Shown: positions 14,528 to 64,000, counted from the stretch's first letter. The stretch is DNA of 64,000 nucleotides from Trichosphaerium sp. ATCC 40318 (GCA_038496445.1 JALMLS010000480.1:205881-269880); one strand, 5' to 3'. The notes: generated by a model not told the origin, from the sequence alone. Made by a program: numbers and translations.

Positions 14528-16083
14528 TTATGCAGGAAAGTTTTGCGGTTGGTAATCTTGTGCTGCATCTTGACGTGTCAGAACAGTATCAAAAAAATTA
14601 GGTGAATGATAGAATTCATGAGAAGGTAGAATATCTCTATTGAAAGCTTCCAAGTCACGTAAAAACCCAGTCTGTGTAACATTTCTAGCTTGGAAAATAC
14701 CTTGCCTTGAGTCCCAAACAAATATACTTCTACCAGTATGATAAAGATCAATAAGCTCTGTATGCTGTACGCTAACTGCATGGTATCTATTCTCCTTCAT
14801 ATTGATCTTAATACCTATACCTTGATACCCAACAGTGATGTAATTACGGCTTGTACTAAGCCCGTAAGGATACAGTTCAAGAGGAGCAGCAAAGAGAGTA
14901 GGTGTAACAATAGATATACCAACAAAGTTATCTATAAGAGTGTTATGAGTAACAACAGCTCTCACTGGACCGTTTAAAGATAAAGCTCCCTTTGGTAGAC
15001 TTCCATCGTCAGTATCACGTTGACCATTGATATAATTGAATCTTATGTAGATGACATTTGCGTTTGCAACATAAACACCACATGACTTAGGATAATTGAT
15101 AGTATTATGTTCAATTATGACATCCGTAGGACGAATACCTCCTGTATGATAGGCTCCATCCTCATGTGTATCATCAATAACATAAGCGTTATGGTATACA
15201 AGAATACCATAGGCACCGCTATCATTTGGTATCTCACTACTATACCCGGCACCAACAATGACATTGTTAGTTACAGTAAGATTTTTTACACCTACACAAG
15301 AAATAAATAAGAACCAATGCCTTCTTATATTGACTACGTACCACTCCAAGCGGCTAAAGCGCCCTTGATATACTGGGCTTGGAATCCGTTACCATCGATA
15401 ACTATATCTTCGATAGTTCCATTAGGAGAGGTCCGAGAACCAATCAAACCGATGCCAAATGCTGCTGAACCAATGTTGTCCGGATATTGAGCGTTCCCTG
15501 TCTTTGAATGGAACTGACATCTTGTGATACTTAATTCACGTATCTTTAGCGTATCATGAAGATTTAATAATGATATCCAGTACGGTGCCATGAAGTTCTC
15601 AAAAGAGCAAGATGTTACTTTTATATTGACCATATCTTGACTTGGTACAGGAAATCCGTACGTCGCTACATTTGCACCGTCGTTATCGATAGTAAAGGAA
15701 ATAGCGTTACCAACAGCGCCACGTCCTTTAAAACCAATACTGGTAAAGAATACGTTGCCTGCAACGTTTCTTACGTGAAAAACGCTCGCAAAGCCCTGAG
15801 CGCCCGTTCCACCGATAATAAGCTGTGATATTGCAGCTCCGTCGCCATAAATATGTACTGGGCCGCGTATTACGAGACCTAGAGCGTTGTTTGCGTCGAA
15901 GTAGTATTGACCAGCAGGAATGCGAAGATTGTTGTTTTGCGCTATAGCATCGTCTATTGCAGCTTGAAACGAGGCTGTATTGTCAGTAGAACCATCACCT
16001 AACGCTCCATAATCTAACACGGAAAGTTGTGCTGAAATAGATACGCAGGTAATGCACAACAATATAATTAGTTGTGTTTGCAT
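14528..16083 (-). CDS. Secreted right-handed beta-helix protein (pectin-lyase fold, GH28/GH55-like N-terminus)
   Basis: Signal peptide, SVLDYGALGDGSTDNTASFQAAID...LRIPAGQY motif and Asn-rich parallel beta-helix repeats; one intron at 15292-15341 joins the two ORFs in frame (AAWSG|VKNL). Confidence 0.85.
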
Positions 16084-16421
16084 CACTAGAAGTGTTGTTT
16101 GCTTTTAGATTGAGCTATTTGAAATTGCTGGACTTGACAACTCTTACAGTAGTCTTTACGCAACTGTTAGGTGTAGTACTAGTCCGCTAACAATGCAATG
16201 TGAACGGCTTACAAAAAAGGAAACAATGGGCTTTTTCGGAAGAGAAATCCTGAAAAACAAACTTGTGTTAGATTTAGTGGTTGGTTTCCTACTATTGTAT
16301 GAACTTATCTCTGAGCACACTCAATAAAAGTCACCTGTTTCTGGTAGTTACGTATACACACCTCATAATCCTTACAGGAAATCTATTGTACAATTACACT
16401 ACTTTGTTTTCTGATAATCCT

Positions 16422-16492
16422 GTCTTCATACATCAAGCTTGGTGTTCTTCGAGAAAAAAGTTTACCACGCAAACCTTCATTTGTATACGACT
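16422..16492 (-). promoter_or_regulatory. SECIS element (type II) in the 3' UTR of the selenoprotein gene
   Basis: Minus strand gtcgtatacaa-ATGAA-ggtttgcgtggt-AAA-cttttttctcgaag-aacaccaagct-TGAT-gtatgaagac: helix I, UGAA/UGAU core with tandem G.A pairs, 12-nt helix II, unpaired AAA and an apical mini-stem. Confidence 0.85.
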
Positions 16493-16547
16493 ACTGAACT
16501 ATCAAAGAAGTATCATGGGCTTTGCAAAGCTTATAAACCCATGTTCC

Positions 16548-17228
16548 TTATGGTCAGCCCCCTCCACAACCTCCCATAAATCCAACATTTCCTAAAAAAC
16601 ACGTGAGCCAAAAAAAACAATTAATTAAGTTGAAACTGACCTAAGTCTCTTCTTCTTCTTGATGGTCCTGTTCTTGGAGTATATGTACGTCGTTGAGGTT
16701 CTTGTTTATCCCCAGAAGGCGTAGCGGTAGGGTTTATAAACGAATTGAAGCTTTGAGAGCGTAAATAGGCAGAAGTATCATGATAACACGTACAATAGCT
16801 GGAGGTGTTCGTAAAACGCCAAAATGATAGCGTATAAGTACGTCAACAATAAGTTAACGCTTTCTTTACTATTCCCATATTGTGTAGGTCCAGAGGTACC
16901 AATAGCTTTTACTTTACACTTTGAGCAACATAGAATGTTGTAAATCTCGTTTGGTGGAAGTATTTTGCCTTTATGTACTAGAACCATTATGTTAGTGTAC
17001 TACAAACGTTTATAACGCGAATAAAGGCGTTTTTGGTAATTTGTACTTGCGTAGCTTCAAGCGCCTAGTTGATACTCCAGTCGCTTTACAAATGCGCTTG
17101 TAAAGGTTCCAGGATGCTTCTTTTGGGTTGTATAATACCTACATTTACAATCAATACTAGAACGCTTTTTACAGTTATCATACATGATAGTTAGTACCCG
17201 AGTAACGAATGGTAATCTTTTCAGTCAT
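16548..17228 (-). CDS. Ubiquitin-like-domain, SelK/SelS-like selenoprotein (156 aa, Sec penultimate)
   Basis: Exons 17228-17184, 17138-17051, 16977-16794, 16750-16641 and 16591-16548 splice in frame (intron 2 is GC-AG); in-frame TGA at 16554-16556, then CCA TAA; SECIS core about 74 nt downstream. Confidence 0.85.
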
Positions 17229-17639
17229 AATACTGGTAGTGACTCAGCATGCCTGTAAAACACTTAACGATTCTTAAGCGGCAGAGATTTTCGACCTGGC
17301 ACGTGGTGAAAACAATGCAATGTGAGCTAAAAGTTTCCAGTAGCCACTGTACAAAGTTACGCAATGTATTTATGGAGTACTTTTTATCTCAAAGAAAACA
17401 CGCGAAAACTAATCTTATGAACAATTTTTGCTTTGCTTCATCAAGTATTTGAAATAGAGGGAGGGCTTAACAAGTTGTTTCAATAAACAATCACGTGGAA
17501 TTTGTACCAGTAAATGTAAATGTAAAAGATTGTTTCGTTGCTTTTTGACATTAGCACTGGAACATTTGCTACGCCTCCCTCATTCTTTCAAGACATTCCA
17601 TGGAGTCCTTATTTCCTTGAGATAATGATTGTTTTATTT

Positions 17640-25222: not shown

Positions 25223-25813
25223 ATGGCATCAAAGCGCAAGGCACCAATTATTAAGATATTCCATTGCCATAATTACAACTAACACCACAAATAGCGAGGC
25301 ACTGCAAAATCGGCTGCTTCTGGCTTGTTGAACCTTCCAGTAGAGTTACACCTCTATATTATCGATTTAAGCTATGAGGTGTATTTGCGGTGGCCTCTAC
25401 TATCAAAATACGCAGCGACAACAACAAGGTTTGATGATTGTCTGAATAAACACGGAAAATGGCTGAAACAAAAGAAGAACTCTTCATATTCACAACTTAT
25501 AAAACAACAATATTGGATGCATGGTAAACGACATGGAGAGTATAAGAGTTGGCACACGAATGATCAGTTATCAAAGCAATGTTGTTACATCAACGGTTTG
25601 AAAGAAGGAGAATACAAAACGTGGTACTGTACTGGTAATGTGTTGCAAGAGTTTCATTTTGTCCATGATAATCTAAACGGAGACTACAAAGTGTGGCACG
25701 CCAATGGTCAATTGTATGTCCATTGCAATTATATCAACGGCATACTCAATGGACAGTACAAACAATGGAATTGTAACGGTGAAGTAAACACTGATTGTAC
25801 ATATGAATGGTGA
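25223..25813 (+). CDS. F-box-like + MORN-variant repeat protein
   Basis: MASKRK, GC-AG intron 25241-25294, then LLNLPVELHLYII; repeats of G.Y..W..NG.L. Confidence 0.75.
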
Positions 25814-33466: not shown

Positions 33467-34597
33467 TCACTTCTCTATTTTAATCACTCCTGGAAGTAAT
33501 TGTAATACATCACAAGTAGCACTTGAATCTTCAATGTTGATGAATTTTACACCAACAAGTGCTGCAACACCAGCATTTGTCACCAAACAACAATTAGATA
33601 AATCAATCTTATAGACACCAGCCAATGCCTTTACACCATCGTCAGTTACTTTTGTACAGCAAAGGATAATAGAATGAACACCGGCCAATGCTGTCAATCC
33701 TTCATCTGTAACATGTGTGAACCCAAGATCAATTGTATGAACTCCAGCTAAGGATTTAATACCATCATCTGTTATAAGCCTACATTGGCAAAGACTAATT
33801 GTATGAACGCCAGACAATGCTTTAAGCCCTTTATCCCCTACTTTTGTATTGGAAAGATGGATTGTATGAACACCAGATAAAGCTCTAACACCTTCACATG
33901 AAACGAAAGTATAGTTAAGATTAATTGAATGAACACCACTTAGTGCCTTGATTCCGTCATTTGATACTATTGTATCAAATAGATTGATTGTATGAACTCC
34001 TGCAAGAGCTTGTACACCTTCATCACTAACATCAGTAGAACTTAAGTTGATTGTATGAACTCCTGCGAGAGCTTTGACACCTTCATCACTTATTGCACAG
34101 GAACTTAAATTGATCGAATGAACCCCAGCCAGTGTTTTAATGCCTTCATCTGTAACACATGTGTCAGATAAATTGATGTTTTTGATTCCAGAAAGTTGTT
34201 TTAGATGAACATCATTAATGAAGAGACAAGATCTAAAGTCAATACTATCAACAACTTTAAAGTCAGTAAAATCAGCTTTTATCTTCCTCTTAGTATAAAC
34301 CCTCAAACCGTACACCCCTTGTAGGTACTTTAAGTGCTTTTGTTTAATGTTAAATAGAATATGAATCGTGTTTGTTGTTATAAGATGCGGTGCGCTTTTG
34401 AATAGCTTTTTGAGCTTTTCTTTGTTTTTAATCACTATCACCCTTCTGTTCACATATCCCACGTGTTGTATTGCGATTGTTTTTAATAATTTAGATGTTC
34501 GTACTACTGAATGCATAGATTTATCAGGAATTAACTGTATAATGCAAACAATGACTTCAACAGGAATCTCAGCAAAGAATGCGCTGTTTTTGTTCAT
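33467..34597 (-). CDS. F-box-like + LRR protein (subtype A), intronless
   Basis: FFAEIPVEVIVCII followed by 21-22-aa repeats VHTIxLxxxxVTDEG(I/V)KALAG. Confidence 0.9.
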   Translation of the reverse strand: MNKNSAFFAEIPVEVIVCIIQLIPDKSMHSVVRTSKLLKTIAIQHVGYVNRRVIVIKNKEKLKKLFKSAPHLITTNTIHILFNIKQKHLKYLQGVYGLRVYTKRKIKADFTDFKVVDSIDFRSCLFINDVHLKQLSGIKNINLSDTCVTDEGIKTLAGVHSINLSSCAISDEGVKALAGVHTINLSSTDVSDEGVQALAGVHTINLFDTIVSNDGIKALSGVHSINLNYTFVSCEGVRALSGVHTIHLSNTKVGDKGLKALSGVHTISLCQCRLITDDGIKSLAGVHTIDLGFTHVTDEGLTALAGVHSIILCCTKVTDDGVKALAGVYKIDLSNCCLVTNAGVAALVGVKFINIEDSSATCDVLQLLPGVIKIEK

Positions 34598-35720
34598 TCT
34601 TGGTTTATAAATACACCACAGTAACCCAAACACTATGTGTTACTCTCTTTGCGATAAGGGAAATCCATTATTAAGCCAACATGCCAGTTAAGGGCGTTTA
34701 CAAACATCGGAACTCAATCAAGAAATTGTTGCCACGAAACCGAAAAAACTTACAAAACATCTTGAAACCATTAAACACATCAAATACACGCCTTGTACAA
34801 CAACTTGAACACGCAGAATTTTAACGCTATTTAATTACGTTTTTTACATCTTTCATGAGCCCTATCACTGCCTACACTCACCCAATTTATGAACTATGAT
34901 TGACACTCACTATGACGTTCCAGAAAAAGATTACATGTGGATATGGCTGACCAAGCGTTGTTTCCAAGCTGCCTGCTTTTGGGAACTGCTGGAGATAGTC
35001 GAATCCTTCATTTCAAGCCAGCTGACCATCAAACGGCGAAGATATCATTAGACCTAACATAAACAAACTGGGTTGTTTTTGTTTGTACCGCACATTTATG
35101 TGAGCAATTGGTAGTTAAGCACAAGGTCATGCTGCACGTCAAAAGAATATGTGGGTGAACTTCATACTCACAAGATTGTCCAAACAGGAAGTTTTGGTGC
35201 ATTGCACTGTTTTTATGTTTATGGTCTTTTACACAAAGAGTGGATTCGTTGTGTCTTGATATACTTAAACCATATTTACGTCAATGGTAAGAGAAGTCAT
35301 CTAAGAATTAAGGATGTGACAAATGACCTGATTATCAATAACAAAATTAACAATCCCAGTTTTTAGGTCATTACTTATAACCTAAACCTTTTTCATTTCT
35401 GATAGTTTGTATAATGGTTGCTATAATATAATTAAACCTTATACTGTTGTTAACATGAACTACATACTCACAGTGACGAACAAATCCGAGTTCAAAAAAT
35501 GGACTATCACTGACTGTGGTTTTTTTGATATATCCTTCTGTACATGCTTCTGTTTTTTAGTCGAGCTAGCCACTGGTTACAGCCACTACATACAGACACC
35601 TGCAAGCTTTTTGATAAAATATATATTTCAAGACAAGTCAAATGGTTTCTCTGGGTCATAATCGTTAAGTGATTAAACGCTTGTACTTGTACAAATATTT
35701 CATGTCAAGTCATCGTATCC

Positions 35721-36704
35721 ATGGACGACACAAAAAGAAGCAAAAAACGTCAAAAACCTTTGAAGAACACCACCTACACCTTGCATAACACGTAAATATC
35801 TTATTGATTGCATAACGTTCTAAAATATTACTTCTAGCGCTCAAATAACATTATTGGGCATGCCTATTGAGATTCTAGCGTTTATATTAACGAATACAAC
35901 AACAGCTCGATTTGCAGCTTGTCAAACATGTCGTATCCTTTCTTCTATCATTCACGACATTGTTGGGTATGACTGTATACGTATAAGAACAGGAGAACAA
36001 GTAAAAGAAGTCATAAAACACAGAGGAATCATTAAACACACAGCAATCAGGTTTAGGACTGATGCAGCTACCGGGTTTCCGTCTGACAAGATTGTGAACA
36101 AATTTGCAGGAGTTCATGACATTGCCTTTCCCATACCTATGTGACAGATGAAGGTATCAAAGCTCTTGCAGGTGTTCACACAATCTACCTAAATAATACT
36201 CCAGTAACAGATGAAGGTGTCAAAGCTCTTGCAGGTGTACACGCTATTAACCTTGAACTCACCAAAGTGACTGATGAAGCAATCCAAAGCCTTGTTGGTG
36301 TACACACAATTAACATAAATTGTTGTCATAGCATTACGGTTGAAGGAATCAAAGCACTCAAAGATGCTCACGATGTTTCTGTTTCTCATGTTAAAAACTC
36401 ATGGCTAGAACATCTTAGCAAAGTTCATACGTTACACTTAGTATGTGGGGCAACAGATGATCAACTCAAAGAGTTGACTAATGTCAAACACCTTGAGCTT
36501 AGTTGTTGCTATGATGTAACAAACTTGGGTTTGAAAACATTGGTCAACCTTGAAAAACTACATGTGTTGGGTAACAACAATATTACAAATGATTGCTTGA
36601 AGCACTTAAAATCTCTAAAACATTTATGTGAACATAATACAAATATTACAAGGGAGGATGTTGAGTCAATGGGTATTCAATATACGAACTATGTAGATGA
36701 CTGA
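35721..36704 (+). pseudogene. F-box-like + LRR protein (subtype B) with a 1-nt frameshift at ~36130
   Basis: A short first exon splices to LLGMPIEILAFI; ORFs 35854-36144 and 36141-36704 join inside an LRR unit only with a frameshift. Confidence 0.75.
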
Positions 36705-46044: not shown

Positions 46045-47610
46045 TTAATAGACGCCGAAATTTCGTACTATTCGTGCATCACCTAACGCCTTGATGCCTT
46101 TTTTTGTAACATGCATACAACCCGTTATATTGATTGCATATACACCCGCCAGTGCCTTTATGCCATTATCTGTAATATTATTACAGTAGAACACGTCTAT
46201 TTCATAAACACCAGCTAAAGCTTTAACCCCTTTGTCTGTTACAAGTGTACAGCGTCTCAAGTTAATTGAGTGAACTCCAGCTAATACTTTAATTCCATCA
46301 TCTGTTATCTTAGTACAATCAGACAAGTCAATTGTATGAACGCCTGCCAGTGCTTTAATGCCATCATCTGTCACATTGCGATACGAGAGACAAATAGTGT
46401 GAACACCACCCAAAGTCTTAATACCAGTATCTGTAACTTTTGTACATGATAGATTAATCGTGTGAACACCAGCTAGGGGTTTAACACCTTCATCTGTTAT
46501 TAGAAAACAACCACATAAATCAATTACATGCACACCTCCCAATGCGCTCACACCTTCATCAGTAATACTCTTGCAATTAGTTAAGTCAATTGTATGAGAA
46601 CCTGCCAGTGCTTTAATGCCATCATCTGTCACATTGCAATTCGAGAGACAAATAGTATGAACGCCACCCAAAGCCTTAATACCAGCATCTGTAACTTTTG
46701 TATGTGATAGATTAATTGTATGAACACCAGAAAGTGCTTTAACACCTTCATCTGTAACAAGTTTGCAGTTCGATAAATCAATATTGTGAATGCCAGCTAA
46801 TGATTTAACACCATCATCTGTAACATTTGTGCTACAAAGATTAATCGTATGAACTCCAGCTACACCTAGTGCTTTGATAGATTCCTCTGTAACCTTCAAA
46901 TGCCCTAAAGAAATGGTATGAACACGTGCTTGTGCTAGCGCCTTAATACAATCATCTGTTATGTTCCTACAATTACTAATATCAATCGAGTGAATGCTTC
47001 CTGCTAGTAACAATGTTTTAATACCATCATCTGTAACATCTGTTCCTTTTACATTAAGTGTTTCAACACCAACTAAAGCCTTAATACTGTCATCTGTGAT
47101 ACGATTGAAACCACAGTCGCTCAAGTCAATCATACGAACACCGGCTAATGCTTTAACACCTTTATCTGTAACACATGCACTGTATAATTTAATTTTACGT
47201 ATTCCAGCAAGTTGTTTAAGAGTATCATTGGTCACGTTATAACAGTAAGAAAAGTCAATGCCATCAATTACATTAAAGTCTGTAAAATCAACTTTATGGT
47301 TAACTTCCTTCAGTTCAAGGGCATAAGCACCTTGTAGGTACTTTAAGTCTTTTTGTTTGATAGTGTAGTCAACGGCAATTGTATGTTTCTTTATGAGGAA
47401 TGGGGCTTCCTTGAATAGACGTCTAAGCTTTTTTCTTGTATTTATTCGTATACTTCTCCTGTCGTCATACCCCAAGTGCTGTATCGCGACATTGGATAAT
47501 AATGTAGATGTATGTACTACTGAGCGCATAGATAACACGGGAGCAAACCGTAGAATATGAATAATGACTTCAACGGGGATCTCATCAAAGAATGCGCTGT
47601 CTGAGTTCAT
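46045..47610 (-). CDS. F-box-like + LRR protein (subtype A), intronless, longest array
   Basis: FFDEIPVEVIIHI plus a long LRR array with an internal 258-bp-period duplication (46325 vs 46583). Confidence 0.9.
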   Translation of the reverse strand: MNSDSAFFDEIPVEVIIHILRFAPVLSMRSVVHTSTLLSNVAIQHLGYDDRRSIRINTRKKLRRLFKEAPFLIKKHTIAVDYTIKQKDLKYLQGAYALELKEVNHKVDFTDFNVIDGIDFSYCYNVTNDTLKQLAGIRKIKLYSACVTDKGVKALAGVRMIDLSDCGFNRITDDSIKALVGVETLNVKGTDVTDDGIKTLLLAGSIHSIDISNCRNITDDCIKALAQARVHTISLGHLKVTEESIKALGVAGVHTINLCSTNVTDDGVKSLAGIHNIDLSNCKLVTDEGVKALSGVHTINLSHTKVTDAGIKALGGVHTICLSNCNVTDDGIKALAGSHTIDLTNCKSITDEGVSALGGVHVIDLCGCFLITDEGVKPLAGVHTINLSCTKVTDTGIKTLGGVHTICLSYRNVTDDGIKALAGVHTIDLSDCTKITDDGIKVLAGVHSINLRRCTLVTDKGVKALAGVYEIDVFYCNNITDNGIKALAGVYAINITGCMHVTKKGIKALGDARIVRNFGVY

Positions 47611-48736
47611 TTTGTGCACCTTAGTACTACAGGTAGCAGGTGATATGCCTAGAAACAATTTCAAGTAAGTGGGAGCGTAACTATCGTCGGCAAAACTGCG
47701 ATTGACCAGGGAACCACGTGGTTTTTCTACAAGAAGAAAAACGAATATTTTGGGAATGATTTTTGGATTTTAGGTTTTTTTTACAGTCCCACAAGTGATG
47801 TGAGGTTTTTTTTTTGTTTGTTTACTTGTTATCACGTGTTGAGGTTTTTTTTTGGAAATACACGTGATGATTAATGTCTCGAACTGGCAAGCCAGATATC
47901 TGGGTAGGATTTATATCTTTTTTTTTAAGATTTTAAACAAAATGATGTTTCCAAGTCTACCTTTTTGTTGACATTTGCCAAATTTCCTTTATAGCTCTAC
48001 ACATTCTAAACGAAGGCTATGTTGAGCTAATACACCATCTAGGTTCCAACTTTTATATTCGCATTTTGCTATACCTTTAACATAGAAACAATGGATTCTT
48101 AACTGCCCGTTAAGATACCAAACTTTATACTCTCCATGCTTTAATCTGTCTTTAAAATAGCAGTGTTTTTAAAGTTGACCAGTTTCAAACCAACGCTTAT
48201 ACTCGCCATGAATAACACTAGTAGTCTTATTATAGTATGGTTTACGATGATTTTTTGCACGTGGTCACATGATTTAACAAATCTACCGAAAAGTTTTACT
48301 AACATATTGACCCTAGCAGCGCCCACAGCAACGTTGGTACTGTTGTGAGAGGTTTTTATGTCAATATAACTGCTTTGTTATTTGAATGCTGCGAGAGCGC
48401 TTCTGTTAGTGTGGAGTAGGTACTAGCGTAGCTTGTAAGTTATATACGTGTACGTTGATGCCAGCATTGTGATTAATGGCAGGCAAATAGTGCACATTGC
48501 GATAGTTCTACACCATTTGACAGAAGTGTCAAATTGTAACAAGGCGACAATGATATTAAGGCACAAGCTAGGTAGCAGGCTTGGTTTTCTCCGCAAACTT
48601 GCTGCGACAGACAATAGTTGTGTTGTAAATCAAGTACAGCGGTTTGACTTAGCACAAAAATACAATCGCAAGCTTAAGTTTACCTAAAACCGTTCAGCTT
48701 TAGCTTAGAAACTACTTCTCACTAGTATACAGAAAA

Positions 48737-50490
48737 ATGAACCAAAACACCGCATTCTTTGATGAGATACCTGTTGAAGTCATTGTTCATATTCTACAAT
48801 ATGTCTCGCTCTTAACTATGCACTCAGTTGTTCGTACATCCAAACTTTTATCAAATATCGCAATAAATCACGTGGGATACGTAAACACAAGAGAAATCGT
48901 CCTTAAAACACCAAAAAAGCTGAAAGAGCTCTACAAAAAACTACCACACCTCATACACACCAATAGTATTACTCTTCGATTCTCCATCAAGCAAAAGCAT
49001 CTAAAGTATCTACAAGGAGTATACAATCTAAGTTTAAAGAGAAAAGACTTGCTGGAGATGCATAGGTTTCCGGAAACTTCTGGAAATCGGGAATTACGGG
49101 AAATTCTGGAAGATGTGGAATTTCTGGAAACTTCCAGAACCTTCTGGAAATTCTGGTAGAACAGCACCTTCTGGAAATTCTGGTATGGATTCACAATATT
49201 TTTTGAGAACATGTTTTTAGAGCACTGTGGACTAGTAAACAATCACATGTACTTAAGTTTTTCAGTCGCTCACTGTGCTGTTCGCAAGACAGCATGTCTA
49301 AGTGATACTCCTACACTATGGCTCATTCGCTAGCACTTAACAACACTAGTACCAACAATATTGACATCGTACGTGTGTTTGGTACTAAAATTTTGTAAAA
49401 ACTGCACCTTACACGCAATATTCATAGCTGAAGTACCTAGGAGTAAGAAAGAACTCACCCCTACCACAGAACAGACTCGAGGTATAAGCTTTGTTAAAAA
49501 TCGAGGAATAAGGCAAAGCCATTGTAAAGAAATAAAGTAAATATGATTTAATTTTTTCGGTTTGGTGAGTGTAATAAGCCACTTCAGTCATTATGTGAAC
49601 TCTCTAAAAATACAATTAAATGAACCTTCCAATGGAAATATTCTTGTGGAACTTTCTTCTGGAAATATTCTTGTAGAATTTGCAGAACAAGCAGAATTTC
49701 CGGAAAAACGGGAATTTCCGGAACCTTCCAGAAACCTATGCACTCCGCTGAAGGTTGATTTTACAAACCTCAACATTGTTAACTGTATTGACCTCTTTAA
49801 TTGTAAGTATGTTACTGATGATCACCTTGGACAACTTGCTGGAGTACACAAGATTAGATTATGGAACGCAAATGTGACAGATAAGGGCGTTAGAGCGTTG
49901 TCTGGTGTTCACACGATTGACTTAAGCAAATGTACAAATGTTACAGACGATGGTATTAAAGCATTAGCTGGTATTCTATTATACTTTATGGCTGTAGTGT
50001 TACAGACAATGGTGTTAAGGCATTGGCTGGTGTTCATACAATTTCTTTGTGCAGTTGTAAATATGTTACTGATGTCGGCATCAAAGCATTAGTGGGTGTT
50101 CACACAATTTCTTTAAGCTTCAACCATATTACAGATGATGGTATTAAAGCGTTGTCTGGCGTTCATACAATCAGACTATGTTATTGTGACTCCGTTACAG
50201 ATGATGGAATCAAGGCACTAGCAGGTGTTCATACAATTGACTTAAGCATGCAACATATTACAGACGATGGCATCAGAGCATTGTCTGGTGTTCATACAAT
50301 TAAACTATGGCATTGTGAGAGTGTTACGAATGATGGTATCAAAGCATTAACTGGAGTTAATACTCTTGTTGTGGATAATTGTAAACAAGTTACAGAAGCT
50401 GGCATAAAAGCATTGAAGGGTGTTCCTTCTGTAACGTTTTTTGACGAAACTTCAGGTGATTTTATTGAACGTTTACTTCGTAAAAAGTAA
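48737..50490 (+). pseudogene. F-box-like + LRR gene (subtype A) disrupted by a TIR element and a 4-nt deletion at ~49973
   Basis: Removing 49054-49746 and one GCT restores KRKDLLKVDFTN; second frameshift in GGTATTCTATT. Confidence 0.9.
49054..49746. mobile_element. 693-bp non-autonomous DNA transposon with TIRs and a 3-bp TSD (GCT)
   Basis: Left end GGAGATGCATAGGTTTCCGGAA, right end reverse complement GGAGTGCATAGGTTTCTGGAA; subterminal TTC(T/C)GGAAA repeats; GCT at 49051-49053 and 49747-49749. Confidence 0.9.
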
Positions 50491-52641: not shown

Positions 52642-53660
52642 TTACTTTTTTCTTTTATATGCTTGCCCATTTTCATCCCAATACTTGTAGTATCTTTCTT
52701 TGCCATCAACATAAAAAATGTGAATCCGTAGTCGCTCATTGCGGTCCCAACGCTTGCAATCTCCATGATTCACTCCATTTGTGGTATTACACAGGTCCCG
52801 TAGGACACCATTTTCATACCAAGACTTGTACTCTCCTTCAAGTTTGCCATTAACATAAACACAATGGCTTTTGATTTGACCATTGTCGTACCAAGACTTG
52901 CACTCTCCATTAAGTTCATCATCAACATATGCACACTGGGCAATCAGGATACCATTTGTCCCCCATTTCTATGTTTACCTTCAAGTTTATCATTCTGAAA
53001 ATGCGTGTGGCATACCAATTTACCACAGTCATCCCAATGCTTGTACTCTCCATCAAGTTTACCTTTTACAAAGTGGTATTTTTGCATCAAGTAGCCATGA
53101 TCATACCAACGCTTGTATTCTCCATCAAGTTGACCATTAGAAAAGTACCCTTGTTCAGAAAGTTGACCATTCTCATGCCATCTTTTGAACTCTCCATGTA
53201 ATTTACCATGTTCCCAATACTCTTGTATCATAATGGTGGGTTGAATAGCAGTGTTTTCTTCTAGATAATGAGGTTCAAATGTATATTGTTCCAACATGTT
53301 CTTCAAGTTACACTTCAAGTAACTTGAGATTTGTGAGGGTGTTGTAGAATAAGGAAAAGTAAATCGATCTACTTTTCGATGGTGATACAAATCAATAAAA
53401 AAGTGAGAATACGTAAACTTCTCCCATTTCCCGTGTTTGTTCAAGTTATCATCAAATCTCGTGCTTACTGCCAAACATTTACATAAAAGCGGCCATTTGA
53501 GATATTAATATAATATTTCGTTGTCTAGATCAATGATATCACGATGTAGCTCAGTTGGGAGCTCTAGTAAGTGATTTTCACATATTAATGGCGCTATCTG
53601 TTTAATCTTTTAGTTAGCACTTTATATATAACCAACGAGTACCTTGCGTTTAGTTGCCAT
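52642..53660 (-). pseudogene. F-box-like + MORN-variant pseudogene
   Basis: MATKRK, intron, LLELPTELHRDII; in-frame TAA at 53505-53507 and a frameshift at ~52968. Confidence 0.85.
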
Positions 53661-53952: not shown

Positions 53953-54612
53953 TTACTTACAATAGAGCGTCCTTACACCATCAACATAAAGAGTTTCAAA
54001 GCATGAAGCCCGGCCACGTAACCACTGCTTACATTTTCCTTCCAGCCTTCCATTGACGTAAAAACAATGCTTCCGCATTTTGCCAGTAGCATACCAACTC
54101 TTGTATTCTCCTTCCAATTCGCCATTGACATAATGGCTGTGCTCTTTTAATTGACCATTATGATACCATAGTTTAACCTCTCCTTCTCTCTTACCATTGA
54201 CATAAAAACAACGCAATTCACAAAAACTGTACTCCTTCCACTCTCCTTCAAGTTTCCCACCAACATAATTATACTCAAGAGACAAATCACCGTTTTTGTG
54301 CCACACTTTCCATTCTCCCTCTTCTTTATCCATAACATAGTTACCTTGTGTTCTGAGCTTACCATTTTCATGCCATTGCTTGTACTCTCCATGAAGCTTA
54401 CCATGGTACCAATATTCTTGACAAACAAGTGTCAACACTGGAGATGTCTTCATTTTGAGCCATTTACTATGTCTATTCAAGTCATCATCGAACCTTGATG
54501 AAGTTGCTGTGTATTTCGACAACAGTGGCCACTTGTAGTACACTTCAAAGTCTAAATCAATGATATCAAGTTGTAATTCGGTAGGAAGACGTAAGAGTAA
54601 GGCAGTATTCAT
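53953..54612 (-). CDS. F-box-like + MORN-variant repeat protein, intact
   Basis: LLRLPTELQLDII; repeats EGEYKxWxxNGxL. Confidence 0.85.
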   Translation of the reverse strand: MNTALLLRLPTELQLDIIDLDFEVYYKWPLLSKYTATSSRFDDDLNRHSKWLKMKTSPVLTLVCQEYWYHGKLHGEYKQWHENGKLRTQGNYVMDKEEGEWKVWHKNGDLSLEYNYVGGKLEGEWKEYSFCELRCFYVNGKREGEVKLWYHNGQLKEHSHYVNGELEGEYKSWYATGKMRKHCFYVNGRLEGKCKQWLRGRASCFETLYVDGVRTLYCK

Positions 54613-55286: not shown

Positions 55287-56519
55287 TTAACCAAGATGAA
55301 TGGTATGTACACCTGTAAGTGCTTTGAGGCCCTCATCTGTTATGTACTTGCAGCGCATGAGATTAATTTCATGAACACTTTTGAGAGCTTTAATGCCTTC
55401 ATCTGTTACATCAGTGTCCATGAGATAAATACAATGAACGTTTTTGAGCGCTTTAATACCTTCATCTGTAAAGTGTTTACATCCACTAAGGTCTATTTCA
55501 TAAGCATCTTTCAGAGCTTTTAAACCTTCATCTGCAACCTTTGTGTTTCTAAGAAATATAGTATGTACACCCTTTAAATATTTTATACCGACATCTGTCA
55601 CATTAGGACAAAAACTAAGGTTGATTTCATGAACACCTTTAAGAGCTTTTAGACCTTCATCTGTAACATTGGTGTCCATAATATCTATAGTATGTACGCC
55701 TTCCAATGCCTCAATACCCTCATCTCGTACAAGAATACTACCACTTAGGTATATTTCATGAACACCTTTTAATGCTTTTACACCCTCATCAGAAATAAGG
55801 GAACAATCAAACATACGTATTGTATGAACACCAGCTAGTGCTTTAAGATCACTATCATTGATTGTACTCTCAACCTCAGCTGTTGTTATGATCTTACGGC
55901 ATCCAAATAGCATTGAATACAAAGTATTCTCTGTCATACCACAAAGTCCAACCAAAGTGTTATTCATTATTCCCTTGTATTGTCTTATCTTTAAGATATC
56001 TTCAACATTGTTTAGGTAAATACAATAATATCCAACAACATCATGGACGATATCTGCCATCAAACGACATGTTTGAGCAACACTGAATCTATCTTCTGCG
56101 TACTCAATGATACTTGAAATAATCTCAGGAGGAAAATCAAGAATATTTTGTACTTTGGTAGTCACGTGATAATTTCTATGTGCTATTGGTAAGCGAAAAA
56201 ACCAAGAAGGCGGGAAAAACGCAAAATGTCGCATTTGGAAGGAGACGCACTTTTTTTTCTTTAATTGCTTTTGTTTTGGTAATGTTACGCCAGTAGGACG
56301 CTGTGCGTGTTGATTGTGAACGTTTACGTCTGTTTCTGCGTGTTTGAAGAGAATTTGATCCAGTTGTTGCACCAGACGCGTGTTTGATGCGTTCAATACG
56401 GTTTCAAGCTGTTTTGTGAGTGTTTCGTGTTTATTCTCAGTAACTTTAATAAAAGCTTCCGAATGGTGATTACGATAATACTTCAACACTTGTTCTATCG
56501 AAACACCAGAAAAGTTCAT
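55287..56519 (-). CDS. F-box-like + LRR protein (subtype B) with an N-terminal extension; probably prematurely terminated
   Basis: ILDFPPEIISSII; repeats LKGVHEIxL..VTDEG; the stop falls mid-repeat and degenerate LRR sequence continues to ~55170. Confidence 0.75.
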   Translation of the reverse strand: MNFSGVSIEQVLKYYRNHHSEAFIKVTENKHETLTKQLETVLNASNTRLVQQLDQILFKHAETDVNVHNQHAQRPTGVTLPKQKQLKKKKCVSFQMRHFAFFPPSWFFRLPIAHRNYHVTTKVQNILDFPPEIISSIIEYAEDRFSVAQTCRLMADIVHDVVGYYCIYLNNVEDILKIRQYKGIMNNTLVGLCGMTENTLYSMLFGCRKIITTAEVESTINDSDLKALAGVHTIRMFDCSLISDEGVKALKGVHEIYLSGSILVRDEGIEALEGVHTIDIMDTNVTDEGLKALKGVHEINLSFCPNVTDVGIKYLKGVHTIFLRNTKVADEGLKALKDAYEIDLSGCKHFTDEGIKALKNVHCIYLMDTDVTDEGIKALKSVHEINLMRCKYITDEGLKALTGVHTIHLG

Positions 56520-56869
56520 TCTGATTTGGGTTATCGTTCTTTTTTGTGAGCTATTTTCGATTTTGTCTAGCAAACTCTGCTTAGCATGCTGACTTAGGAT
56601 TTGCCCTTAAGGCATGGCGAGCCTGACACTTTGCTATCAATATAACAAAGAATCTCAGCCTAGTGGCTATTATCATACAGCTTGTACTCTCCGTAGGTCT
56701 CCAGTGATGTAAAAAACAGTGCTCACTTGGCTAGTTGACTATGTTAGTTGAGGATTGGAGGATTACGTAATTGAATGGTTTACCAGCAGGCAACAACAAC
56801 TCTTAAGAATTCTTAACGCAAGTACTAATGGCAATATTGCGTATATCTGTTGTACATGTATCTCGTGGC

Positions 56870-57095: not shown

Positions 57096-57437
57096 CCACA
57101 GTTCAGTAAAATCCTATCGAAGCCAATATTGTGACGGATAATGTCGTTATAGGCGACACATTGTAGAAGCTTGTATACGCTGTTTTTATTTAAATAACGA
57201 AAGTGAATACTACTCTGGCGGAAGCTGTGAAAGTAGAATGACTTGTTCTGTCATTGTTTCATCGTATAACAAAACACGTATGAGATAAGTAGTGAAATCG
57301 ATTTGTCACGTGATAAAATCACTGTTGACTGGATTAAGACCATTCAAAATAATCACGTGAATATCCATGTTTTTCTTCTAGTTGTTTTACCCTGCGTCGA
57401 ACCAAACCACTTCATTGACGCAAGCTATAGATTAAAT

Positions 57438-58808
57438 ATGAACGTAAACAGTGCATTCTTTAATGAGATTCCGGTTGAAGTTGTCGTTCATGTTCTACAA
57501 TTTGTTTCATTGTTAACTTTAAGATCAGTTGTCCTTGTATCTAGAATATTCGCTAAAATAGCTACAACTCACTTGGGATACGGTGGAGGAAGACGTATTA
57601 TCCTCAAGAGAAAGAAGAAGCTAAAAAAGCTATTCAAGGAAGCGCCTCACCTCATCAAGACATGCAGAATCGATGTTAGGTTCTCAATCAAACAAAAACA
57701 CTTGAAGTTCTTACAAGGAGCCTATAACCTCAAGCTTTATAGTAGAATTGACCACATTGACTTTGATGGCTTTAAGGTGAACAGCATTGATCTTACTAAT
57801 TGTTTATACACATTTACTGACAAACATCTCAAACGACTTGCAGGAACAAAAAGAATTATAGCGAAGGGTTGTAGATTAATTACAAGCAATGGTATTAACG
57901 CACTGTATGGAGTTCATACAATTAATTTAAGCTTTTGTGGTAATCTTGGAGATGATTGTTTTACAGCATTGGCTGGAGTTCATACGATAAGTTTGGCTAT
58001 TACAAATGTAACAGATAATGGCATCAAGGCATTGGCTGGAGTTCATACAATTATTCTAAGCTTGTGTAAAGTGACTGATGTAGGAGTTAAGGCTTTGGCT
58101 GGTGTTCATACCATCTGTTTAACTCAGTGCAAGCATGTTACGGATGATGGCATTAAAGCACTGGCAGGGGTTAACACAATTAAGTTAAACTGGTGTACAA
58201 AAGTTACTGAAGAGGGTATTGCAGCTTTAGCTGGTGTCCATAAAATTGAGCTCTATAAAACAAATGTTAGAGATGTTAAAGTGCTTGCTGGGGTACACAC
58301 AGTGGGTTTAGGACATTGTACCATCACAAATGACATTGTTATAGCGTTGGCAGGTGTTCATACTATTGGTCTAAACCATTGTGACTCTGTTACAGATGAC
58401 GGCATTAAAGCCTTGGCTGGTGTTCATACAATTGATTTAAGCTTTTGTTTAAAAATAACTGATTGTGGTATTGAAGCATTGGCAGGTGTTCATGCAATTA
58501 ACATTAGTGGCACTAATGTAACGGATAAGGGTATCAAGGCTTTGGCTGGTGTACATACTATCAGTGTAAGAAGTACAAGAGTTACAGATGATGGTGTTAA
58601 AGCGCTTGTTGGCGTTCATGCTATTGATTTGGCTTTTTGTAGAGCTGTCACGGATGATGGAGTTAAAGCCCTTGTAGGTGTTTACTCAATTAACCTCAAA
58701 GGCACTGCAACTTCGAAGAAAATTTATAAATCACTTCCAGAAGTTAAACGACTTGAGCAAAAGCACTATACCTTTTACAGCTTTCCGTTATTTGATATTT
58801 TGATTTAG
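57438..58808 (+). CDS. F-box-like + LRR protein (subtype A), left-arm copy
   Basis: FFNEIPVEVVVHV plus LRR array; intronless. Confidence 0.9.
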   Translation: MNVNSAFFNEIPVEVVVHVLQFVSLLTLRSVVLVSRIFAKIATTHLGYGGGRRIILKRKKKLKKLFKEAPHLIKTCRIDVRFSIKQKHLKFLQGAYNLKLYSRIDHIDFDGFKVNSIDLTNCLYTFTDKHLKRLAGTKRIIAKGCRLITSNGINALYGVHTINLSFCGNLGDDCFTALAGVHTISLAITNVTDNGIKALAGVHTIILSLCKVTDVGVKALAGVHTICLTQCKHVTDDGIKALAGVNTIKLNWCTKVTEEGIAALAGVHKIELYKTNVRDVKVLAGVHTVGLGHCTITNDIVIALAGVHTIGLNHCDSVTDDGIKALAGVHTIDLSFCLKITDCGIEALAGVHAINISGTNVTDKGIKALAGVHTISVRSTRVTDDGVKALVGVHAIDLAFCRAVTDDGVKALVGVYSINLKGTATSKKIYKSLPEVKRLEQKHYTFYSFPLFDILI

Positions 58809-62680: not shown

Positions 62681-64000
62681 CTAAATCTTAATATCAAATA
62701 ACGGAAAGCTGTAAAAGGTATAGTGCTTTTGCTCAAGTCGTTTAACTTCTGGGAGTGATTTATAAATTTTCTTCGAAGTTGCAGTGCCTTTGAGGTTAAT
62801 TGAGTAAACACCTACAAGGGCTTTAACTCCATCATCCGTGACAGCTCTACAAAAAGCCAAATCAATAGCATGAACGCCAACAAGCGCTTTAACACCGTCA
62901 TCTGTAACTCTTGTACTTCTTACACTGATAGTATGTACACCAGCCAAAGCCTTGATACCCTTATCCGTTACATTAGTGCCACTAATGTTAATTGCATGAA
63001 CACCTGCCAATGCTTCAATACCACAATCAGTTATTTTTAAACAAAAGCTTAAATCAATTGTATGAACACCAGCCAAGGCTTTAATGCCGTCATCTGTAAC
63101 AGAGTCACAATGGTTTAGACCAATAGTATGAACACCTGCCAACGCTATAACAATGTCATTTGTGATGGTACAATGTCCTAAACCCACTGTGTGTACCCCA
63201 GCAAGCACTTTAACATCTCTAACATTTGTTTTATAGAGCTCAATTTTATGGACACCAGCTAAAGCTGCAATACCCTCTTCAGTAACTTGTGTACACCAGT
63301 TTAACTTAATTGTGTTAACCCCTGCCAGTGCTTTAATGCCATCATCCGTAACATGCTTGCACTGAGTTAAACAGATGGTATGAACACCAGCCAAAGCCTT
63401 AACTCCTACATCAGTCACTTTACACAAGCTTAGAATAATTGTATGAACTCCAGCCAATGCCTTGATGTCATTATCTGTTACATTTGTAATAGCCAAACTT
63501 ATCGTATGAACTCCAGCCAATGCTGTAAAACAATCATCTCCAAGATTACCACAAAAGCTTAAATTAATTGTATGAACTCCATACAGTGCGTTAATACCAT
63601 TGCTTGTAATTAATCTACAACCCTTCGCTATAATTCTTTTTGTTCCTGCAAGTTGTTTGAGATGTTTGTCAGTAAATGTGTATAAACAATTAGTAAGATC
63701 AATGCTGTTCACCTTAAAGCCATCAAAGTCAATGTGGTCAATTCTACTATAAAGCTTGAGGTTATAGGCTCCTTGTAAGAACTTCAAGTGTTTTTGTTTG
63801 ATTGAGAACCTAACATCGATTCTGCATGTTTTGATGAGGTGAGGCGCTTCCTTGAATAGCTTTTTTAGCTTCTTCTTTCTCTTGAGGATAATACGTCTTC
63901 CTCCACCGTATCCCAAGTGAGTTGTAGCTATTTTAGCGAATATTCTAGATACAAGGACAACTGATCTTAAAGTTAACAATGAAACAAATTGTAGAACATG
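62681..64000 (-). CDS. F-box-like + LRR protein (subtype A), right-arm copy; start lies beyond the window
   Basis: Near-identical to 57438-58808. Confidence 0.9.
   Translation of the reverse strand, partial: HVLQFVSLLTLRSVVLVSRIFAKIATTHLGYGGGRRIILKRKKKLKKLFKEAPHLIKTCRIDVRFSIKQKHLKFLQGAYNLKLYSRIDHIDFDGFKVNSIDLTNCLYTFTDKHLKQLAGTKRIIAKGCRLITSNGINALYGVHTINLSFCGNLGDDCFTALAGVHTISLAITNVTDNDIKALAGVHTIILSLCKVTDVGVKALAGVHTICLTQCKHVTDDGIKALAGVNTIKLNWCTQVTEEGIAALAGVHKIELYKTNVRDVKVLAGVHTVGLGHCTITNDIVIALAGVHTIGLNHCDSVTDDGIKALAGVHTIDLSFCLKITDCGIEALAGVHAINISGTNVTDKGIKALAGVHTISVRSTRVTDDGVKALVGVHAIDLAFCRAVTDDGVKALVGVYSINLKGTATSKKIYKSLPEVKRLEQKHYTFYSFPLFDIKI

Follow-up and report, generated by a model that had tools for sequence, protein, structure and literature searches.

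Does the minus strand between positions 17228 and 16422 encode a selenoprotein, in which an in-frame TGA is read as selenocysteine (Sec), or does a SECIS-like hairpin merely lie beside an ordinary stop codon, or beside no gene at all? The locus is part of a 64-kb stretch of DNA from Trichosphaerium sp. ATCC 40318 that was analysed whole and is called the window here; coordinates are counted from its first letter. The favoured answer, with a probability of about 0.62, is a real five-exon gene whose UGA codon 155 is read as Sec by means of a type II SECIS, giving a membrane-tethered protein of the SelK/SelS kind.

Reading of the sequence and scripted splicing join five exons in frame. The spliced coding sequence (CDS) is 471 nt long and is sequentially composed of 154 sense codons, TGA (16556-16554), CCA, and TAA (16550-16548). 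The ATG (17228-17226) is the first of its frame, and an in-frame stop lies six codons upstream. The gene model comprises the following features.

Exon 1, 17184-17228, minus strand: 15 codons from the ATG, forming the start of the putative ubiquitin-like head; the best codon-usage frame is the proposed one.
Intron 1, 17139-17183, minus strand: 45 nt, GTATGA...TGTAG, with in-frame stops inside and a GC content of 0.29 (exons, 0.40).
Exon 2, 17051-17138, minus strand: 88 nt, the middle of the head.
Intron 2, 16978-17050, minus strand: 73 nt, GC-AG, with donor GCAAGT and an ACTAAC-like branch site.
Exon 3, 16794-16977, minus strand: 184 nt, covering the last part of the head, a linker, and the bulk of the hydrophobic segment (residues ~85-110).
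Intron 3, 16751-16793, minus strand: 43 nt, GTACGT...CAAAG.
Exon 4, 16641-16750, minus strand: 110 nt, the Pro/Arg/Thr-rich part of the tail with an RRRR run.
Intron 4, 16592-16640, minus strand: 49 nt, GTCAGT...TTTTTTAG.
Exon 5, coding part, 16548-16591, minus strand: the Gly-rich end GG-C-GGG, then TGA, CCA, and TAA.
Putative selenocysteine codon 155, 16554-16556, minus strand: the in-frame TGA, a codon that acts as a stop elsewhere in the window.

The introns are GT-AG except for intron 2, which is GC-AG, and all four donors carry a G at +5. The GCAAGT donor of intron 2 has the usual form of functional GC donors. Removal of this intron rebuilds LKLLHKGKIL, the kind of motif that ubiquitin-like domains typically carry. 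Read by hand, two other splice choices for intron 2, a nearby GT donor and an alternative acceptor, run into stops. Retention of intron 4 would stop the frame after six further codons. The first-pass annotation had proposed both this GC-AG intron and a five-exon splice running to TGA-Pro-TAA; the intron is present and the scripted splice matches the proposed one base for base.

A nine-codon upstream ORF on the minus strand (17221-17250; ATG 17250-17248, TGA 17223-17221) overlaps the main ATG at 17228 out of frame. Either a role in translational control or mere chance could account for it.

The five-exon gene, which is unannotated, is very probably real. The opposing view holds that there is no functional gene, and that a chance chain of open segments, or a decaying pseudogene, lies beside a SECIS-like hairpin. 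Chance was gauged with random 681-nt sequences of the window's dinucleotide make-up, spliced with up to four introns of 40-80 nt. When any GT..AG is permitted, 3% of them yield a spliced ORF of 154 codons or more, which leaves room for a chance chain; when donors are restricted to those with G at +5, only 0.2% do. Codon usage divides in the same way. The absolute score of the spliced CDS is about 0 bits and so not clearly positive, when the codon table is derived from seven long ORFs of the window, a set biased towards leucine-rich repeats. However, the proposed frame scores best in five of five exons, and the margin of the spliced CDS over each of the five alternative frames is at least 44 bits. 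The GC content is 0.40 in the exons and 0.29-0.40 in the introns, three of the four introns lying at 0.29-0.34. A chance chain would also have to account for a GC-AG intron with an exact GCAAGT donor, whose splice restores a ubiquitin-like motif, and for a product that runs from an ordered domain through a helix to a disordered tail, an order rare among random ORFs. The absence of a functional gene is improbable.

Empty homologue searches are the remaining point in favour of a non-gene. Pfam gave no match on the exon pieces, even at E values up to 10 for exon 3 (60 aa) and exon 4 (36 aa). The SelK/SelG family PF10961 gave none either, on single-exon queries in which the tail and the membrane part are not contiguous. 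A PDB sequence search with exons 2 and 3 came back blank. Exhaustive phmmer comparison of 1.84 billion representative sequences with exon 3 found no relative, its sole match, P0001, being a translated tandem repeat. Metagenome scans with exon-3 peptide patterns and an exact 24-mer found nothing. These blanks weigh little, because a 60-residue query cannot reach diverged orthologues among 1.8 billion sequences. In addition, a neighbouring ORF of 273 residues with a β-helix match has no homologue, not even itself, in a collection of 5.8 billion proteins. The proteins of this genome are therefore absent from the collection, and a missing self-match means nothing. Nor are missing homologues surprising, since SelK shows poor homology even between close species (PMC3753652).

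The β-helix ORF is one of two adjoining minus-strand ORFs (14528-16086) with right-handed beta-helix or pectate-lyase-like Pfam matches, located just downstream of the putative selenoprotein gene. Elsewhere the window holds a cluster of LRR_6 (RNI-type) ORFs, on the minus strand at 33467-34633, 46045-47664, 55287-56573, and 62681-63979, and on the plus strand at 57303-58808, 36141-36704, and 49562-50092. At least one of them (55287-56573) contains an F-box-like motif, and the cluster looks like a locally expanded gene family. Variants of the MORN_2 repeat occur in three ORFs among the LRR genes (25325-25813, plus strand; 52944-53474 and 53953-54612, minus strand).

The message ends with GG-C-GGG, UGA, one further codon (CCA, Pro), and a second stop, TAA. 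A reassignment of TGA as a sense codon was considered and rejected, as dropping TGA from the set of stops lengthens the ORFs of the window no more than dropping TAA or TAG. No tRNA gene was found in the 64-kb window, and Sec machinery was not seen there. Two RNA structures lie at and beyond the TAA.

Proximal 3'UTR stem-loop, 16503-16550, minus strand: includes the TAA; 9-bp core formed by 16543-16535 with 16522-16514.
SECIS-like element of type II form, 16422-16491, minus strand: recognized by a SECIS_1 match, by its fold, and by a pattern-plus-energy scan.

The proximal stem-loop has a folding energy of -19 kcal/mol (z = -2.0), and 10 of 200 shuffles are equally stable. Proximal stem-loops have been described for human selenoprotein mRNAs with a C-terminal Sec (PMC6844570), which the one here resembles.

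The SECIS-like hairpin begins 56 nt past the TAA, at 16491. Its AUGA (16480-16477) lies 73 nt after the TGA, close to the ~74 nt given by the first-pass annotation, and this spacing suits a SECIS, which lies in the 3'UTR at more than about 50 nt from the UGA. The 5' strand of the core is AUGA-A (16480-16476), and in the unconstrained fold a UGAU (16435-16432) is placed opposite the AUGA in an internal loop. The resulting UGAA/UGAU pair agrees with the SECIS core consensus UGAN/KGAW (PMC3753652) and forms a kink-turn core with tandem G.A pairs, flanked by helices I and II. Helix I pairs 16491-16483 with 16431-16422 through eight base pairs and an internal loop. Helix II consists of ten pairs, two of them G-U, and has one bulged C. 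An unpaired AAA bulge (16463-16461) is located 13 nt after the AUGA, at the far end of the 10-13 nt past the core at which the AA(A) of a SECIS is found. Beyond the AAA, a 4-bp mini-stem carries a 6-nt loop, which gives the hairpin its type II form. The signature of Dictyostelium-type SECIS elements, UGUA before the core and U-U after it (PMC2375036), is absent.

In Rfam, SECIS_1 (RF00031) aligns along its entire model, positions 1-64, with minus-strand 16491-16422 and scores 15.5 bits. This is far below the gathering score of 35 bits, and no hit at gathering level exists anywhere in the window. SECIS_1 is nevertheless the best of 4227 Rfam families in the 154-nt 3'UTR, with an E value of 1.6 over all families and ~4e-4 for the single family. 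The unconstrained fold is no more stable than those of shuffled sequences (z = -0.89). The element had been called a canonical type II SECIS. The UGAA/UGAU core, the AAA bulge, and the mini-stem bear out the type, whereas the low score, the G-U pairs and bulge in helix II, and the unremarkable stability do not fit the adjective. The SECISearch3 paper names the SECIS elements of non-metazoans as the most difficult ones to find (PMC3753652).

A constrained-fold scanner (pattern plus energy) that tolerates the helix II bulge was run over both strands of the window. The hairpin is the only site of its quality in these 128 kb. In 60 dinucleotide shuffles, comparable sites occur by chance at 0.47 per 128 kb, or 3.6e-6 per nt, so that the chance of meeting one in a 360-nt 3' zone is ~1.3e-3, in agreement with the Infernal estimate. 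The same rate, about half a site per 128 kb, implies that a genome-wide scan should meet a handful of such hairpins behind ordinary TGA stops. The hairpin by itself is no proof of recoding.

On the plus strand, opposite the 3'UTR and the SECIS-like hairpin, a mechanically called ORF of 104 codons with a TTG start (16281-16595) lacks any Pfam match and is in all likelihood spurious.

Codon 155 is nonetheless probably decoded as Sec, judging from the features that surround it in the sequence. The competing view is that the gene is real, that TGA is an ordinary stop, and that the hairpin is a chance look-alike of a SECIS. The protein would then end in ...GG-C-GGG, whose Cys, fourth from the end, would give it a CaaX-like C-X-X-X terminus that recalls the prenylated MUB/UBL3 proteins. 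The score below the Rfam threshold and the z value of the fold suit a look-alike, as do the few chance hairpins to be expected behind TGA stops across a genome. So do two features of the codon itself: no Sec/Cys alignment is conserved with any homologue, the searches having found none, and the extension from TGA to TAA is a single codon and carries almost no coding evidence. These points are opposed by the low local chance of such a hairpin and by the first rank of SECIS_1 among the Rfam families. The chemistry of the terminus also opposes them, as Gly-Gly-Gly makes a poor CaaX box and MUB proteins have neither a hydrophobic helix nor a long tail. The balance tips to Sec because of GG-C-GGG before the UGA and one codon plus a second stop after it, because a hydrophobic segment precedes an R/P/G-rich tail in the design of SelK and SelS, and because a stem-loop covers the TAA and TGA is not reassigned. 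An ordinary stop is unlikely. If the hairpin were a chance look-alike after all, it would still have calibration value. At this base composition, a full pattern-level SECIS at 15 bits turns up about once per 270 kb of strand.

Read through UGA as Sec, the predicted product has ~156 residues: a basic head, one hydrophobic segment, and a C-terminal tail. The tail comprises 45 residues, 64% of them G, P, R, S, or T, includes the RRRR run, and ends in GG-C-GGG-Sec-Pro. The putative Sec is thus the penultimate residue and follows GGG, and Cys151 lies four residues before it (C-x3-U). The hydrophobic segment spans residues ~85-110 and is preceded by ~84 residues. Its Kyte-Doolittle maximum, 1.45 over 19 residues, is below the usual cut-off of 1.6, and the segment may be only peripherally embedded. 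The first-pass annotation had assigned this arrangement to SelK/SelS; the design is present, but membership of the SelK/SelG family is a further claim, for which the exon pieces gave no Pfam match.

The net charge is +11 in the head and +5 in the tail, and the 15-residue flanks of the hydrophobic segment are both neutral, so charge does not decide the orientation. With a single span, the head lies on one side of the membrane and the Sec tail on the other, which implies either a lumenal tail, unlike in SelK and SelS, or a lumenal head. This weakens the coupling of ERAD to the proteasome or p97 that had been proposed for the protein, which is speculation and faces this topological problem.

The N-terminal ~75 residues somewhat favour a β-grasp fold, as suggested by their resemblance to ubiquitin. 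The first ~72 residues had been described as fitting a ubiquitin-like (UBL) pattern. Residues 20-60 align colinearly with ubiquitin 19-62, and the hallmarks match in position, namely the Pro that precedes the helix, the Gly that follows it, L-x-x-GK-x-L, and Y-N-I. When the two are aligned by hand, alternating hydrophobic residues further coincide with strands 1, 2, and 5 of ubiquitin. The statistics, on the other hand, are marginal. An HMM built from 89 distinct ubiquitins of giant-virus contigs gives the spliced N terminus 1.6 bits, a value equalled by 28 of 2000 shuffles. Smith-Waterman comparison with ubiquitin yields z = 1.7, and hhalign yields P = 0.05 and a probability of 1%, with 5 of 200 shuffles as good. 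Overall the alignment is weak, with p ~0.01-0.07.

The protein could therefore be a real selenoprotein of the SelK/SelS kind whose N-terminal 75 residues are not ubiquitin-like. The head could then be a small basic domain of a different type or be disordered in part, and a link to ubiquitin receptors would fall away. The weak scores agree with this alternative, as does the fact that Pfam ubiquitin matched neither exon piece and that the PDB searches were blank. It is set against the colinear alignment with its coinciding hallmarks and against the alternation at strands 1, 2, and 5. In addition, the ubiquitin profile is narrow (Neff 1.6), and a divergent UBL would score poorly on it regardless. 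A selenoprotein with a head of another kind is rather unlikely.

For the favoured reading, a selenoprotein of the SelK/SelS kind, a mechanism can be proposed. The gene would be expressed as a protein of ~156 residues in which the UGA at codon 155 is read as Sec, recoding being directed by the type II SECIS hairpin in the 3'UTR, with its AUGA core 73 nt past the UGA. The basic N-terminal domain of ~75 residues, with a hydrophobic and glycine pattern colinear with ubiquitin, may be ubiquitin-like, and the moderately hydrophobic helix at residues ~85-110 would tether the protein to a membrane. The 45-residue disordered tail would carry Sec near its end, as in SelK and SelS. Sec and Cys151 may cycle between a selenenylsulfide and a reduced form, as in the tails of SelS and thioredoxin reductase, and the protein may act as a small reductase or a redox-sensitive adaptor at the ER. 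Failure of Sec decoding would leave a -Gly-Gly-Gly end; in animals, truncated SelK and SelS are targeted for degradation by a C terminus of this kind. The mechanism to which the analysis commits is narrower than the proposed ERAD coupling and leaves the head aside: the product is most likely a membrane-associated protein whose flexible C-x3-Sec end cycles through a selenenylsulfide.

A bolder version makes the protein the first selenoprotein with a built-in UBL, whose head docks to the proteasome, p97, or ubiquitin receptors while the C-x3-Sec tail does the redox work. This version is tentative and more doubtful than not. Literature searches returned no report of a selenoprotein with a ubiquitin-like domain or of a UBL-SelK fusion, and if true it would represent a new selenoprotein architecture, perhaps a new family. 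SelK and SelS are the least understood of the widespread selenoproteins, and their short, disordered, membrane-tethered Sec tails are linked to quality control in the ER. A naturally occurring form that bears a UBL would give an evolutionary hint about the machinery that such tails serve, as well as a simple test construct. The gene also illustrates what annotation loses in Sec-rich protists, where a UGA is taken as a stop and where a GC-AG intron and terminal exons of 11 to 15 codons occur.

Several known systems share part of this design. If TGA were a stop, one of them would be MUB/UBL3, small UBL proteins in which a Cys is the fourth residue from the C terminus. They differ in having a prenylated, true CaaX box, and in lacking a hydrophobic helix, a long R/P/G-rich tail, and a SECIS. 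If the head is a UBL, the protein resembles the ER-membrane UBL proteins of ERAD, HERPUD1/Usa1 and TMUB1, in which a UBL facing the cytosol is tied to a membrane segment. These proteins are much larger, have a hairpin or multiple membrane segments that leave both termini on the same side, and possess no Sec or redox tail; the likeness is one of design. The G-C-U-G tail of thioredoxin reductase is another flexible C-terminal Cys/Sec pair with Sec beside the last residue, and it also relies on a SECIS located near the stop. There, however, Cys and Sec are adjacent and serve a large flavoenzyme, whereas here they form C-x3-U without a catalytic domain.

SELENOK (SelK/SelG, PF10961) is likewise small, with a single hydrophobic segment ahead of a disordered tail rich in Gly, Pro, and Arg. 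In both, Sec (putative here) lies at most three residues from the C terminus directly after Gly-Gly, the SECIS is of type II with an AAA bulge, and the truncated product ends in Gly-Gly (Gly-Gly-Gly here). The tail here agrees with the SelK pattern, in which a disordered stretch rich in Gly, Pro, and charged residues carries Sec 1-3 residues from the end. The two proteins differ at the N terminus, where SELENOK has ~20 residues before its membrane segment in place of the folded-looking head of ~84 residues found here. SelK is not known to have a Cys partner near Sec, whereas here a Cys lies four residues upstream, and the exon pieces share no detectable sequence similarity or Pfam match with it.

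SELENOS/VIMP also has a membrane-tethered, disordered tail with a penultimate Sec after Gly-Gly. It shares with the protein here a Cys partner for Sec, and its mRNA likewise has a proximal 3'UTR stem-loop immediately behind the stop (PMC6844570). The N-terminal membrane anchor, p97-binding motif, and long coiled coil of SELENOS have no counterpart seen here. In human SelS the selenenylsulfide joins Cys174 and Sec188 (PMC3628699), so the Cys-Sec spacing is 13 residues there and 3 here. Both SelK and SelS are disordered proteins tethered to a membrane, in which Sec follows Gly-Gly and lies 1-3 residues from the end (PMC6844570, PMC3628699), and in animals failed Sec decoding leaves a di-glycine end that is recognized by the CRL2-KLHDC2 ligase (PMC9098119). 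The protein encoded here is grouped with SelK and SelS by its probable way of working, not by family membership.
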